Assembly: GCA_001600695.1 (NCBI GenBank)
Contig: BCKQ01000007.1
Location: 254,713-318,712 of the forward strand
DNA: 64,000 nucleotides
Reading direction: 5' to 3'
Source of the DNA: Ascoidea asiatica JCM 7603
Taxonomy: Eukaryota; Fungi; Ascomycota
Shown here piece by piece: positions 32,146 to 39,619 of the stretch. Below the pieces are notes generated by a model. That model did no database searches, was not told the origin of the DNA, and worked only from the letters and a program-made list of their open reading frames with translations. The position numbers were made by a program, and so were the translations under genes. Positions within the stretch are counted from its first letter, which is position 1. Each line of letters begins with the position of its first letter.

Positions 32146-34548
32146 CTATTCAACAGCGCAAGTATCATTGATTTTTTTAGAAAAGTCTTTTAGATTTTCA
32201 TTAAGAGTTTCTTTGAAACTTAAAAGATCTGCAACAACACGATTAACATCTTGAGTTAAATTAGCTCTTTTTTGTTTTAAGTCTAAAATAATTTCATTTT
32301 CTTGTTGTTTAATTTGAGCCAATTCTATATCTAAATCATTTTCTTTTGTTAAATTATATTCAGCATCTTCAATTTTTTTTTGATAACTTTGAGTCATTTT
32401 TTGTATATTTTGATTTTCTTCAATTTCTTTTTGTTTTAAAGATTTTAAAGTTATATTTTTTTGACTAATTTCAGTAATAATATTTTCTTTTTCATTATCA
32501 TTATTTGAAATTAAATCATTAATATCTTCAATTTTATGAAATAAAGTATTAAAATTTGAAGGATAAGAAGAATAAATAACATCTAATTCATTTTTAATTT
32601 TAGTTAAATTATTTTTATAATCATATTTCCAATCTTGATTATTTAATAAATCTTCAATTGATTTACCTAAATTTGATTCAGAAAGTAAATTATCATAATT
32701 TATATCATTAATTAATAAATTATCTTTATCAGGAATATCAATTAAAACATCATTAATTTTAACTTGAAAATTTGAATCATTATTAATTTTTTTAATATTT
32801 CTATTTATTGAAGATAATGAATCAAAAACTTTATTAATATTTAAATTATAATTAATTAATAAATCTTCTAAAATTTTAAAATTTATATTAATTTTTTTTT
32901 TAAGATCATTTAAAATTGAATTTAATTGATTATTTTTTAAATTTTGTTGATTAATTTTTATAGAAATATCATTTTTTTCATTAATTAAATCATTAATTTT
33001 ATTAATATTTAAATTTTTTAAATTTAATTGATTATCAATAAAATTTATTTTTTTTTTAAAAAATTCATTTTTTAAATTTAATTTATTAATTTCATTATTA
33101 ATTTTTATTAAAGTATCATCCCAATTTGGTTTTGCAAGTTTAACTTTATTATTAAATTTATCAAAAACTTTAACATCATTTTTTAAAGCTTTTTTTTTTG
33201 CCATTAAATTATTTAATTTATTTAATTGATTAATAATATAATCATTTTTTTTAAAATTTTTATCAATTTCAATTTCAAAATTTGAAATTTTATTTTGAAA
33301 AAATTCAAAAAATTTATTAAAAAAATTTAATAAATTATTAAAATTTTTATTTTTTAATGGATCTTCAATACATTTTTCATCACCATTAATTAAAAAATCA
33401 TTATAAGATTTAAAAAAAAAATTAGAAGAATTTAAATGAATTAAATTATTTAAATTATCAATATCTTCTAAGAATTCTTCATTTACATTAAAATTATTTA
33501 AATTATTCATAAAAGAATTTAAATCTTCATTACCATTAATATTATTATTAATATTATTATTTGTAGAATTAAGATTATCATGAATTAAAAATTGATAAAA
33601 TTGATTTTGTTTTAAAGAATTATTTAAATTTATTGAAAAATCAACAAGCCAAAATAATAAATCAATTAAAATTATAGATAATCTATTTGAATTAAAATTT
33701 AAAATATTTTTTGAAATTGAATTAATTTTTGGATATCTTAAAAAATTTAAAATTTCATAAATTTCATTATCAGAAAAATTTAAAATTAATTTATCTTTAT
33801 TTATATTTTGTGGTATAAACATTGAATCTATTGATAATATTATAAATAAGAAAATTTTAATAAAATCATGTTTTTGAATTTGTTTAAAATTTCTTTGATT
33901 TAAAAATCCATTAATTGTTGAGTTTAAATTAATTTTTAAATTAAACATTGAATAAAAGTTATTTGATTCTAAGAAATCAATAATTGATTGAATTTTTTCT
34001 TTTAATTCATTATAACTGTTATTATTAATATTATTATTATTATTGTTACTCATATAAAAAGAAGAAGGTCTTTGTGATTTTGAATTATAAGTTGAAGAAG
34101 CAGAATATGGAGTATTTGAATTATTATTCATTGGAATTGTTGAGAATCTATTATTTAAATTATGATTATTGTTAATTATATTAGAAGTTAATCTTCTTGA
34201 AGAAGATGAAGAAGCAGAAGATGGAATTGGATTTCCATTATTATTAGTATTTAAGTAATTCAAATTATTGAAATTGGGTACTTGAGGTCTAGCAAATGAT
34301 AATCTATTATTATTATTAATGTTATTGTTATTTGATATTGGATTTAATTGATTTATTGGATTTGAATGAGTGATATGATTAGATAAAGAAGATATTCCAG
34401 AAAGAGTTGATCTTTGATTAAGACCATTATTTAAACGCCTTTGTTTAACAGAATTTGTAATAGGAATGGGAATTTGAGATTTCAAAGAATTTGAATTTGA
34501 ATTTAAATTTGAATTTAAAGCTGCTTTTTGAATGGGTAATTGTGACAT
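32146..34548 (-). CDS. NDC80: Kinetochore protein Ndc80/Hec1, divergent
   Basis: Basic Ser/Arg-rich tail; CH domain (IIDFLESNNF, FIKIF, EIYEILNFLRYP..SISK, LLFWLV); KKALKNDV..F..W; long coiled coil. Confidence 0.8.
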   Translation of the reverse strand: MSQLPIQKAALNSNLNSNSNSLKSQIPIPITNSVKQRRLNNGLNQRSTLSGISSLSNHITHSNPINQLNPISNNNNINNNNRLSFARPQVPNFNNLNYLNTNNNGNPIPSSASSSSSRRLTSNIINNNHNLNNRFSTIPMNNNSNTPYSASSTYNSKSQRPSSFYMSNNNNNNINNNSYNELKEKIQSIIDFLESNNFYSMFNLKINLNSTINGFLNQRNFKQIQKHDFIKIFLFIILSIDSMFIPQNINKDKLILNFSDNEIYEILNFLRYPKINSISKNILNFNSNRLSIILIDLLFWLVDFSINLNNSLKQNQFYQFLIHDNLNSTNNNINNNINGNEDLNSFMNNLNNFNVNEEFLEDIDNLNNLIHLNSSNFFFKSYNDFLINGDEKCIEDPLKNKNFNNLLNFFNKFFEFFQNKISNFEIEIDKNFKKNDYIINQLNKLNNLMAKKKALKNDVKVFDKFNNKVKLAKPNWDDTLIKINNEINKLNLKNEFFKKKINFIDNQLNLKNLNINKINDLINEKNDISIKINQQNLKNNQLNSILNDLKKKININFKILEDLLINYNLNINKVFDSLSSINRNIKKINNDSNFQVKINDVLIDIPDKDNLLINDINYDNLLSESNLGKSIEDLLNNQDWKYDYKNNLTKIKNELDVIYSSYPSNFNTLFHKIEDINDLISNNDNEKENIITEISQKNITLKSLKQKEIEENQNIQKMTQSYQKKIEDAEYNLTKENDLDIELAQIKQQENEIILDLKQKRANLTQDVNRVVADLLSFKETLNENLKDFSKKINDTCAVE

Positions 34549-35363
34549 TTTTGAGATTTTTTTAAAATGTAATAATTATTAGATATTATTAAAGATAGAA
34601 GAATACTATTGAATTTTAAATCAGCTTTAAAAACTATTAAAAAGGAATCTGAGATTTGTTCCTTGTGTGTCAGAATATCAATGAATTAATTCTTCTTCCT
34701 TCTTTGACTGAATTCATTCAATGATCTAATTGAATTAAAATAGATTCAAGTATCTGAATTGATTTAATATTTATGATTTAAATTGATTTTTTTTGATTAT
34801 TTTGATTATTTTGATTCAAATTGATTTAAATTGAAGATAAATGGAAAGTAAACAAGAAATTGATAAACAAAGTCGAGAAAGCAAAAACAACCCGCAAATC
34901 TGGCTTTATAGTTCTAAACAAGGGCTCTAATAAAACTGTTTAGGGCTCTGTTAAAGACCCACAAAATTGGTTGGATCCACAGTTCTGGCTTTTAAAAATA
35001 TGTATTTACATGTGGTTTAATGTACCATTTGCAGTTAAATGCATACACGAATTTCTAGACGGAAGTTTATTTTATTTCATTCCGTGGCTCTAATACGGAA
35101 CTGTATTATCCGTCCGTGTACTGGAATTGAACAAGACGGATACAGTAATCCGCTGTGAAATTTTCCAAGATTTACCATTCTGCAGGGTCCCAAAAAGCTT
35201 CTTTCTCAGGCAGAATTTTAAGATCGGAAGAACTCACAAAGGAAATTTACCAAAATGTGGGTAAATAAATATAAAAGAAGATACAGTAAAAATTAATGGT
35301 TGTTTTAGAATTTATTTCGCGTGTTTATTCTAAAGTTGAATTAACTGGAATAAATTCACATTA

Positions 35364-35422
35364 AATAAGATGGAATAAGATGGAATAAGATGGAATAAGA
35401 TGGAATAAGATGGAATAAGATG
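35364..35422. repeat. 10-bp tandem repeat (AATAAGATGG)x6
   Basis: Directly visible upstream of the protease gene. Confidence 0.93.
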
Positions 35423-35679
35423 AAATTAAATGAAAAATCAAATAAAAATCAGTTTTTTTGGAAATTATACTCTTTTTCATAAGACCAAATCCTTCTTTCC
35501 TTATACCAAAAAAAACTCTAATTTATATTTGATTTTATCCTTCATAACCATGGAAAGATTTTTTACATTATATCCTATATAATGGAGTCTTAAAGACTTT
35601 TTAAACTAACAATTCTTTTTTTTTAATCTTAGTTTGTTTTCGATATCAATAAATAATTTACAAAAATAAATCAATAATA

Positions 35680-36265
35680 ATGATATTTAAACAATTTTTA
35701 ATAATATTTTTATTAATAATAAATATATCAAATTCATTATGGTTACCAGAAAATTTTAAAAATTGGAAAAATTCATATTTTAAAACTTCTAAGATTGATA
35801 ATTTAAAAAATTTAAAAGAAAAATTTGATAATTTTAAATTTGAAGAAATAAATGATGATGAATTTTTAAAAAATACATTAAAATTAAAATTTAAGAAAAA
35901 AAATATTTTAAATAAAAGAGATTCTTCATTAATTGGTGATGGTTATTCATATTCTTCAATAATAAATCAAGAAAATTTTGCTTATTATATAACTTTAAAT
36001 GTAGGTACACCATCTCAAGAAGTTGAAGTACAAATAGATACTGGATCTTCTGATCTTTGGATTATGTCTTTAGATAATCAATTTTGTTCTAAAGAATCAG
36101 TTGAAGATTATGAAGAAGAAGAAGATGATGATGATAAAGATGATGGAAAAACAAAAAGAAATGTTAATGTTAATGTTAATGTTAATGATGATGATGATGA
36201 TGATGATGATTATAATATGTATGATATTGAAGAATATGATGAAGATAATTTAGATTATTATAATG

Positions 36266-36300
<35 letters not shown>

Positions 36301-37413
36301 AAAAATGGTAAAGATATTGGATTAATTCCAAAAATGAGAAGAAAAAAAATATTATCAAGAAGAAAAAGAGAAGTTTGGGATACTGTTAAACAAGGATCAA
36401 TGAATTGTTCAGATATGGCAGGATTATTTGATCAAAATGAATCTTCAAGTTTTAAGAATATTTCTACTGAATTTTTAATAAGTTATGGTGATACATCAGA
36501 AGCTTCTGGATTTTGGTCAACAGAAACAATTAATATAAAAAATACAAATATAATTTTAAAAAATTTTCAATTTGGTTTAAGTACATTTGCAAATAGTTCA
36601 AATTCAGTCTTAGGTATTGGACCAAAAGGTAATCAATCACCATATACACCAGATGGTAATGGTACAAATTATCTAAGTTTTCCATATGCTTTAAAAGATC
36701 AAGGTTTTATTTCTAGAAATATTTATTCAGTTTATATGGATGATATTAATTCAAATTCAGGTACAATTTTATTTGGAGCTGTTGATATTAAAAAAACTAA
36801 AGGTGATATTATTACTTTACCAATTTTAAATTCAACTTATAATTATTCAAATGGTGATAAAGTAACTTTACTTGATTTTTTTAATATTAAATTAGATAAT
36901 ATAACTTTAATACCAAAAAAAAAAATTTCAAAGGATTATAATAAAATTTTTATTAAAAATTCATCATCAATTGTTATTTTAGATACTGGATCTTCAGCTT
37001 CAAATTTTCCATATGAAATTTTATATAATATTATATCAAATTTTGAATCATATACTTATGATAATTCAAGTGGATATTTTTCATTTAATAATACATTATA
37101 TAATCAAGAAATTATTAAAAATTATTATATAACATTTAATTTTGGTAATGTTCCAATAAAAATACCAATAAGTAATTTTATTGGAATTGATTCAGATAAT
37201 TATTCAAATTATAATGATTTAAATGATAATAATAATGATAATAGTGATTATATTATTTCATTTTTAGTTTCAAGTTCAGATGATAATTCTTTTTTATTTG
37301 GTGATGATTTTTTAAGATATGCTTATGTTATTTTTGATATTGATTATTCAGAAGTGACTATAAGTCAAGCAAATTTTAATTCCAAAAGTGAACATATTGT
37401 AAGAATTTTATAA
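35680..37413 (+). CDS. Secreted aspartic protease, yapsin/Sap-like, no GPI tail
   Basis: Signal peptide, KR pro-site, VGTPSQ, catalytic DTGSSDLW and ILDTGS, ISYGDTS, VLGIG, FGDDFLR.AYVIFD; ends at EHIVRIL. Confidence 0.92.
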
Positions 37414-37501
37414 TCAAAACTTTTCATTAAATAAATTTTACTTTCTCATATTTTTTTTTTTATCAACAACTGAATAAATGTAAATTGTAAATAATACAAT
37501 C

Positions 37502-37630
37502 AAAACCAACAACTAGATTACCTTATACTCTCCTTCCACAGGGATCGAACCGGATATGCTCAGCGGAAAACTCTTCCAAGCCCAGAAATCTAGAATTGTT
37601 GTAGTTCCCACCAAAATGCCATTACAGCGT
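37502..37630 (-). ncRNA. SRP RNA (SCR1/7SL)-derived ~129-nt Pol III gene: Alu domain and closing helix, no recognisable S domain
   Basis: Starts ACGCTGTAATGGCATTTTGGTGGGA (fungal SRP RNA 5' signature GCTGTAATGGC with UGUNR motif and A box); B box GGTTCGATCCC 37551-37541; CAACAA-TT-CTAGATT pairs with AATCTAG-TTGTTG; ends in TTTT. Confidence 0.72.
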
Positions 37631-37889
37631 AAAAAAGGTGAATTTTACTTTGCCATACAGAAATACAACTGGAGTAACAGAAACTAAGAAAGTTGTCTAC
37701 AGTGATACTGTACAAAATATTCACCAAAACCAGTAGTAATAGGAAAACGATATTCAATATAATACTTTCTGATTTAGAATATTTTTTTCATATGATATAC
37801 TATGGTATAATATATAATAATATAATAATATAATAATAATATGCTTGTTTTTAATCTATGTTTGGGATTAACCTTGTTATGTTGTTTGT

Positions 37890-37959
37890 GCCTCTTTAGC
37901 TTAGTGGTAAAGCGTTGCACTTGTAATGCAAAGATGACTAGTTCAATTCTTAAGAGGTA
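37890..37959 (+). pseudogene. tRNA-Thr(UGU)-derived sequence, probably non-functional (T-stem 2 nt short)
   Basis: Acceptor GCCTCTT/AAGAGGT, D arm GCTT/AAGC, anticodon arm TTGCA-CTTGTAA-TGCAA, T loop TTCAATT; 3' T-stem strand is only CTT against ACTAG; 70 nt; downstream T-run. Confidence 0.8.
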
Positions 37960-38227: not shown

Positions 38228-39619
38228 TTAAGCTTTAATAGGCTTTATTGATTTAGATGAATTTATAGATTTTATAGATTTTATTGAAAATAAAGATACA
38301 TGAGATTTGGCAGTTACCATTGATTTTGAACATGTACTTTCATTAGTTGTATTTGTATTTATAGTTCTTTCATTAATATCTATATTTTCACTATTTTCAC
38401 TATTTTCACTTATATTACTTATATTACTTATATTACTTATAGATTCAGTAAATGAATCATAATCAATTAAAAGATTATTAAAAGTTGTATCTTCAACAAC
38501 TGAAGCATCATAATCATTAACTATAGAAGATAAACTAGAATTATCAAGAAAGTTATTATTATTATTAATATAATTTAAAGATATTGAAGAATTTAAACTT
38601 GAATTTTTAGAATGTTTATATAATAATGGATTTTTAATAATTTTTGTACTTTTAGTTAAATTATTTATTAAATTATCTTTATTATTGTTATTATTATTGT
38701 TATTTAAAAATGTTTTAGAAGTTGATAATATTGAAAGATTATTAATTTCTTCCATTTCTCTTGGATAATTAATTAAAGGTTGATAATCATTATTTGAAAT
38801 ATTATTTGATAAATTATTAGTTAAATTATTAGTTAAGTTAATAGTTTTATAAAATAAATTATTTAAAAATTGTATAAATTTATCCTTTAATGATAATTTT
38901 GAATAATCTATAATATTATTATTAAAATTATTATTAAAATTATTATTAAAATTATTATTGAAATTATTATTAGTATTTAAAAGAGAATTATGTAAATAAG
39001 ATGAATTTATGAATATATTATCATTATTATTAATATTATTATTAAGATATGTTACATTGACATTAAAATTAAAAAAATTTTTATTATTATAATTATTATT
39101 ATAAATATCATTATAAAAATCAGGTAAATTATTTGATAAATATTCTAATTCTTTTTTATTTTTACCTTTACTGTTTATTAGATTATTATTATGATTACAA
39201 TGATTATTATTATTATTTTCATTTTCTTCATAATCAAACATATCAAAAAACATATCAACTGAATTTCTTCTTTTTAATTTTTGTTTTATTGAATTACTAA
39301 GATTTTTTATATTTTTATCATAAAGATATTGATAATTAATTATATGATTATTATGATAGTTATAATTATCATTTTCATTTTCAATTTCATCATCATTATA
39401 TTGATTATCATTATCATTGATAATTTGATTATTATAAAATTCATCAGAATTATTTATATATTCACCATTATTATTTGAATCTTCATTAAAATCTATAACA
39501 GTTGAAGGATAAATACAAGAACATAAGAAATAAGAAATTGAATTGAATATTGAATTATTTAAATTAGAATTAGAAATAATTATAGAATTATTATTTAATA
39601 ATTCATTAAAATTTGACAT
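38228..39619 (-). CDS. Uncharacterised Asn-rich protein
   Basis: 463-codon ATG ORF with the same codon bias as neighbours; only short non-repetitive islands (YFLCSCIYP, KRRNSVDMFFDMF, YDASVVED). Confidence 0.6.
   Translation of the reverse strand: MSNFNELLNNNSIIISNSNLNNSIFNSISYFLCSCIYPSTVIDFNEDSNNNGEYINNSDEFYNNQIINDNDNQYNDDEIENENDNYNYHNNHIINYQYLYDKNIKNLSNSIKQKLKRRNSVDMFFDMFDYEENENNNNNHCNHNNNLINSKGKNKKELEYLSNNLPDFYNDIYNNNYNNKNFFNFNVNVTYLNNNINNNDNIFINSSYLHNSLLNTNNNFNNNFNNNFNNNFNNNIIDYSKLSLKDKFIQFLNNLFYKTINLTNNLTNNLSNNISNNDYQPLINYPREMEEINNLSILSTSKTFLNNNNNNNNKDNLINNLTKSTKIIKNPLLYKHSKNSSLNSSISLNYINNNNNFLDNSSLSSIVNDYDASVVEDTTFNNLLIDYDSFTESISNISNISNISENSENSENIDINERTINTNTTNESTCSKSMVTAKSHVSLFSIKSIKSINSSKSIKPIKA

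Follow-up and report, generated by a model that had tools for sequence, protein, structure and literature searches.

Does Ascoidea asiatica JCM 7603 carry a shortened, Alu-like derivative of its own signal recognition particle (SRP) RNA, and would such an RNA have a function of its own? The question is raised by a stretch of 129 nt on the minus strand of contig BCKQ01000007.1, which an earlier note, written from the sequence alone, had described as an 'Alu-only' gene transcribed by Pol III. For its role, the note had offered a stand-alone Alu RNP, one half of a split SRP RNA, a SINE-like precursor or a decaying duplicate. We followed up these proposals by computational comparison.

Three intact SRP RNA genes and a truncated copy

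The element was found where the earlier note had placed it, at 37502-37630 of the window (the whole 64,000-nt stretch of DNA that was analysed). It is flanked by the 3' end of an aspartyl protease gene on one side and by a tRNA-Thr(TGT) gene on the other, forming a GC-richer island (47% GC) in surroundings of 15-25% GC; the features of the locus are collected in Table 1. Its match to the Rfam Fungi_SRP model (RF01502) is weak, at 23.5 bits (E 0.011), unlike a fungal SRP RNA, for which the score cut-off is 65 bits. By BLAST, three full-length SRP genes of this genome match the element at 80-85% identity across about 110 nt, and these two results bear out the derivation from SRP RNA.

Table 1. 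Features in and around the element, in window coordinates (nt numbers follow the 271-nt SRP gene or the element itself)
Feature	Position	Strand	Basis or remark
SRP-homologous segment, nt 1-104 of the 271-nt gene (5' hairpin and whole helix 5 5' strand)	37527..37630	-	ungapped alignment, BLAST
Fungal Alu 5' hairpin with UGUNR motif	37618..37628	-	identical to intact copies
Pol III A box, nt 10-20 (by consensus)	37611..37621	-	unchanged relative to intact copies
Pol III B box, nt 80-90	37541..37551	-	identical to C8 copy; inherited
Closing helix, 5' arm, nt 23-44	37587..37608	-	carries 7/12 element-specific substitutions
End of SRP homology; candidate deletion junction with AGTTT microhomology	37525..37529	-	putative; best score tied with alternatives
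Closing helix, 3' arm, with T4 at its end (weak terminator); probably left over from SRP nt about 243-255	37502..37519	-	
Eroded trace, possibly of the original 3' end (C-to-T pattern)	37489..37501	-	not statistically secure
A11 tract (plus strand: T11, 38 nt beyond the protease stop codon)	37451..37461	-	
17-bp direct repeat, downstream copy (15/17), immediately after A11	37434..37450	no strand	
17-bp direct repeat, upstream copy, 10 nt ahead of nt 1	37641..37657	no strand	
Upstream flank like that of the C4 copy (T-run and about 25 nt); overlaps the upstream repeat copy	37631..37663	-	BLAST extends 33 nt upstream
tRNA-Thr(TGT) gene, damaged, syntenic with A. rubescens	37890..37959	+	
Aspartyl protease gene, convergent with the element	35680..37413	+	

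The short form is real and not an assembly error. Assembled contigs from three DNA runs (two samples, two studies), which may be the source of the assembly itself, cross the element with 0 differing letters. Nine variant letters that were observed belong to a paralogous contig ending at 37527 and not to the element.

A genome-wide profile search returned three intact SRP RNA genes of 271 nt, here called C4 (113.7 bits), C8 (112.9 bits) and C2 (98 bits), and the element as the fourth match. The three genes are dispersed (C4:1142300, C8:377757 and C2:2273212), about 88-90% identical and covarying, and SRP54, SRP14 and SRP21 are encoded by one gene each. The element does not supply the SRP RNA of this genome. 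S-domain sequence has no match in the genome beyond the three intact genes, and an orphan S domain was not detected.

Most budding yeasts have one SRP RNA gene. Y. lipolytica CLIB89 has a single SCR1 (PMC5014426). Three intact genes and one ruin form a small, unusual family, and a literature search returned no paper mentioning Ascoidea and SRP RNA together. Just upstream of the C2 gene (L003, about 1430-1500), a B-box-like motif sits in a T-arm-like stem, like a tRNA-derived leader, and fainter traces of such a motif occur in the flanks of the other SRP copies. The C8 gene is adjoined by a divergent aspartyl protease gene (L147:5405-6841), probably by coincidence; this gene is absent among the matches to the protease of the window.

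Nt 1-104 of the element align with the intact genes without a gap. Over nt 2-108, ungapped identity is 89/107 to C4, 86/107 to C2 and 83/107 to C8, compared to 93-94/107 among the intact copies themselves, and the derived positions 32-34 are common to the element and C4. The 5' UGUAA hairpin and both Pol III promoter boxes are present. The UGUNR hairpin and the A box had thus been recognized correctly; the B box had also been recognized, but it occurs in all intact copies; it derives from the full gene and cannot count as evidence particular to the element. In these features and in the 5' strand of helix 5, the element, a direct paralog of the three full-length genes, resembles fungal SRP RNA (RF01502; S. 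cerevisiae scR1). Unlike fungal SRP RNA, it lacks helices 6-8, the 3' strand of helix 5, the terminal helix and a long T terminator. Motif and profile comparison detected neither the helix 6 nor the helix 8 motifs in the element, including the SRP54-binding loops, in agreement with the loss of the S-domain core that had been claimed.

The structure derived from the three intact sequences is a single extended rod in which 97% of cells are paired and seven pairs differ at both positions. In the rod, nt 19-57 pair with 234-267 and nt 64-94 with 195-228, and nt 100-104 begin helix 6. Projected on the element, 38 of the 59 long-range pairs had their partners in the lost part. Most of nt 46-104 have no partner left, and nt 19-22 have none either. 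The element is therefore not a clean Alu domain, and the label 'Alu-only' does not apply, because it carries the whole 5' strand of helix 5, of which nt 46-104 are an orphaned strand reaching the foot of helix 6. The pairing of the 5' strand with the 3' terminus does not hold either, as nt 19-23, which pair with 263-267 in the terminal helix of the intact copies, are left without a partner in the element. The internal hairpin proposed in the earlier note is marginal (predicted pair probability <0.5) and was rejected as a domain: its bases belong to the orphaned strand, and in the intact RNAs they pair with the 3' strand, with covariation. As a whole, the RNA folds no more stably than shuffled sequences (z +0.96), with a predicted -26.9 kcal/mol compared to -37.9 for a simulated fresh deletion of the C4 gene.

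Closing helix, candidate deletion junction and terminator

A short closing helix of nt 23-44 with nt 112-129 is predicted with pair probabilities of about 0.6-0.95. At a fixed position, it exceeds chance, with p about 0.01 (0.006-0.015): 7 of 1125 GC-matched genomic 22-mers ending in T4 and 151 of 10000 shuffles equal it. The helix thus stands as first described with its position fixed, but not with the partner position free, where 7% of matched sequences do as well. It is strongest with the element's own 5' arm (-13.4 kcal/mol, versus -3.3 to -10.3 kcal/mol with the arms of the intact copies). Element-specific changes at 35, 38, 39 and 42 (nt 35-42) create new pairs with the tail, and one apparent double change is seen in the helix (pair 42 with 248). 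Seven random changes yield an equally strong helix 5% of the time. Three of the four pair-creating changes fall within five bases; template switching can produce such clustered, stem-perfecting changes (PMC8794818).

The best join of the C4 gene to fit the element leads from nt 106 to 242/243. It falls on the AGTTT microhomology (nt 102-106 and 238-242 of the C4 copy) and keeps the ancestral pairs 40-44 in register. On this footing an internal deletion, as the earlier note had suggested, is plausible and indeed likely but not proven: alternative joins tie or score within one point of the best, and the tail taken alone shows no significant similarity to the SRP 3' strand (p 0.15-0.8 in three scoring schemes). 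An 8-mer of the 3' arm of the closing helix recurs 43 nt downstream, right before the A11 tract (window 37462-37519, minus strand), possibly as a small local duplication.

The T4 run at the end of the element is a weak stop, because T4 runs lie inside every one of the three intact SRP genes, which terminate in T9-11. T4 also occurs at nt 15 and 61 of the element. T6 or longer follows within 45 nt in 26 of 30 tRNA genes of the genome; past its T4, the element meets the first T5 at nt 469 and the first T6+ at nt 706, inside the protease gene. For S. cerevisiae Pol III, five Ts are the minimum functional terminator and six are needed for fair efficiency, while a hairpin directly ahead of T4 stimulates release in vitro (PMC9278858). 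A discrete product of the ~129 nt given in the earlier note would therefore be possible but not the default, and it appears doubtful. Pol III read-through from the element would overlap 250-490 nt of the 3' part of the protease gene in antisense.

Rate of change, neighbours and route of origin

Since the split of the element from C4, 12 changes in nt 2-104 fall on the element branch and 4 on that of C4 (p=0.08), which suggests a rate of change about three times that of the sister gene. The substitutions A66C and G76A disrupt pairs conserved in all intact copies, and they are uncompensated. Two observations speak for some constraint: nt 2-23 and the B box have escaped substitution (probability 0.03-0.1 if decay were uniform), and the changes lack a clear AT bias (6 vs 4, p=0.12). 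The neighbouring tRNA-Thr(TGT) gene differs from four intact copies elsewhere by 5 substitutions and a 2-nt deletion in the T stem; the deletion abuts its B box, and the promoter boxes are kept. The levels of damage are alike, 5/70 for the tRNA gene and 12/103 for the element (p=0.44).

The only Ascoidea relative compared, A. rubescens, is a distant one (its HOM2, the nearest HOM2 homolog, is 77% identical), and it keeps the order SRP40, NDC80, tRNA-Thr(TGT). Neither a protease nor an SRP-like sequence was found in its syntenic NDC80-to-tRNA-Thr interval, which spans a few hundred bases versus 3.3 kb in A. asiatica (window 34548-37888). Synteny is held through NDC80 and broken between tRNA-Thr and HOM2, on the element-facing side. 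Other observations at the locus concern NDC80 (window 32146-34548, minus strand), which is extremely diverged, with a weak Pfam match and two hits among 1.8 billion representatives; a GC-richer island with inverted repeats upstream of the protease gene (window 35080-35146); and a 463-aa ORF at 38228-39619 without a Pfam match.

The element is the only truncated SRP copy in the genome. Two further exact hits to the 5' Alu motif, both inside ORFs, and ten one-mismatch hits were inspected, and none had an SRP-like continuation. A SINE or other repeat family was rejected with this copy number, as seen by both BLAST and motif search, and the SINE option of the earlier note goes with it. In metagenomes, an exact 21-mer found nothing and a gapped pattern gave only chance hits without S-domain motifs, setting aside one hit labelled as human gut metagenome (L069).

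The search for a target-site duplication gave a divided answer. A 17-bp direct repeat (15/17) does bracket the element, with A11 directly before the downstream copy, and resembles a target-site duplication with an A tail; its upstream copy, however, lies inside a flank resembling that of C4. In the non-coding DNA of the genome, 0 of 2500 do as well as repeat plus A11, and under a relaxed criterion 5 of 11223 overlapping placements, from two loci, do so; the direct repeat alone has p about 0.016. The resemblance of the upstream flank to that of the C4 gene goes beyond the shared T-run (p about 0.009), and the C8 and C2 sister pair likewise shares a flank (p about 0.009). There was no match in the genome to the non-LTR markers APE endonuclease (PF14529) and zf-RVT (PF13966). 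Among 6 ORFs sampled from the RT regions, a small part of the 54 RT hits, two had LTR-type domains, three had RT only and one had no hit. The idea that the tail is the 3' end of a LINE (a U6/L1-type chimera) was rejected, with no second tail copy and no LINE marker found in the genome. Because of the shared upstream flank and the lack of a detectable LINE, DNA duplication is a likelier origin than retroposition, which leaves the repeat unexplained.

A probable decaying duplicate and its alternatives

The element is probably a decaying, redundant fourth copy of the SRP RNA gene, and hence a pseudogene. Among the options first offered, a decaying duplicate fits best, given the three intact genes, the faster change, the single copy and the missing A. 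rubescens ortholog. Intact SRP genes elsewhere were also one half of what the earlier note had said would refute it, and these genes exist. A functional homolog elsewhere is here combined with the disabling loss of essential domains, as in a truncated pseudogene.

We envisage that a fourth SRP gene, sister to C4 and sharing its flank, arose as a DNA-level duplicate of the C4 lineage and brought about 30 nt of upstream flank with it. Roughly nt 105-242 would then have been lost, probably via deletion between short repeats, taking with them helices 6-8 and the 3' bases that pair with most of the 5' strand of helix 5. By known SRP anatomy, an RNA without helices 6-8 cannot bind Sec65/Srp19 or Srp54, and the shortened RNA would therefore be unable to target proteins. 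[quoted passage not shown] Some of this RNA would stop at T4, and most of it would continue into protease antisense. It would presumably be cleared by TRAMP and the exosome in the manner of mis-assembled scR1, which is removed by Rrp6, TRAMP and the exosome (PMC4176351). Most of the complementarity in the closing helix would be inherited, and a single template switch could have supplied the cluster of changes that strengthened it. Counted against decay are the intact nt 2-23 and B box, the retained 47% GC, the weak AT bias and the new pairs of the closing helix, as well as the ability of a hairpin ahead of T4 to stimulate termination (PMC9278858).

An unlikely alternative to decay is a functional Alu-like RNA. 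An SRP gene duplicate that had shed its S domain would have acquired a new closing helix that aids Pol III release at T4. The element would then be transcribed by Pol III into a 129-nt RNA whose UGUAA hairpin binds Srp14/Srp21 and which titrates these proteins or contacts ribosomes; as an Alu-monomer-like RNA that arose independently in a budding yeast, it could affect translation or SRP assembly. Its would-be models are BC200 and the small cytoplasmic Alu RNAs, Pol III transcripts with an Alu domain that bind SRP9/14-type proteins (PMC11581171). The perfect 5' hairpin, A box and B box would suit this role, as would a closing helix that is beyond chance at its fixed position (p 0.006-0.015) and strongest with its own 5' arm, the apparent double change in pair 42 with 248, and the hairpin-assisted termination at T4 shown in vitro (PMC9278858). 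Against it stand about 60 nt of orphaned strand, the lost terminal helix, a fold weaker than that of shuffles, the weak terminator, the faster evolution, the single copy and the absence of an ortholog. BC200 is abundant, conserved across anthropoids and slower to evolve than its flanks (PMC11581171), whereas the element has no ortholog and changes faster than its sister gene. A stand-alone Alu RNP is unsupported.

It is improbable, too, that the element acts at the DNA level only, its A and B boxes and the damaged tRNA-Thr gene serving as a landing site for TFIIIC and Pol III and the RNA being irrelevant. Such a site could act as a boundary or interfere with the protease gene, like the ZOD1 and ETC sites of S. 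cerevisiae. The element and the back-to-back tRNA-Thr remnant both keep their promoter boxes, and read-through would overlap 250-490 nt of protease antisense. Like ZOD1, YGR033C and the ETC sites, the element is a degenerate Pol III gene of a budding yeast that keeps its promoter boxes, and ZOD1 and YGR033C are old tRNA genes still occupied by the Pol III machinery (PMC5356446). Those sites are, however, tRNA-derived with measured occupancy, while the element is SRP-derived and a candidate for occupancy only. Moreover, the retention of the boxes is within chance for copies that are 7-12% diverged, and the T-stem deletion of the tRNA gene directly abuts the B box.

Equally improbable is a retroposed origin, which would imply no function. 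A non-LTR element, since lost, would have reverse transcribed an internally deleted, A-tailed SRP RNA, and the insertion, dead today, would have created a 17-bp target-site duplication. The element does resemble the SINE1 monomers (FAM/FLAM/FRAM, PB1 and the hagfish SINE1-1_EBu; PMC7245038) as an internally shortened 7SL/SRP derivative that keeps the 5' ~100 nt and both promoter boxes, with the S domain removed, and that is followed by an A tract and flanked by a candidate 17-bp repeat. The rarity of repeat plus A11 (0/2500, or 5/11223 at two loci in the looser test) and the lineage-specific locus are consistent with retroposition, and hagfish SINE1 makes duplications of about 17 bp (PMC7245038). 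Unlike SINE1, however, the element is a single copy with no partner LINE found. Its deletion is lopsided, such that the Alu domain does not appear to have been reassembled from corresponding 5' and 3' portions. The parent gene shares the flank ahead of the element; this C4-like flank contains the upstream copy of the repeat, and flank sharing is also seen in the C8/C2 sister pair (p about 0.009 each). Ten extra nt precede nt 1, the tail is single-copy, and the T11 of the plus strand may be the 3'-end signal of the protease gene. The genome has no APE endonuclease or zf-RVT match, and the RT ORFs that could be typed among the six sampled are LTR-type.

The remaining proposals, one half of a split SRP RNA and an assembly collapse hiding the S domain, can be dismissed as extremely improbable, since there are three intact genes, S-domain matches are confined to them with no separate S-domain gene in the genome, and contigs of two samples span the element without differences.

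The element belongs to no functional family, because it fails both the S-domain and helix tests of SRP RNA and the copy-number test of SINE1. Were it expressed and bound by Srp14/Srp21, fungi would provide a parallel to the first step from 7SL to Alu, B1 and BC200, in a culturable microbe where the action of an isolated Alu domain could be tested. The step from 7SL to a SINE has been reported only for Euarchontoglires and hagfish (PMC7245038). As the pseudogene that it probably is, the element is of little importance in itself and records turnover in the SRP RNA gene family.
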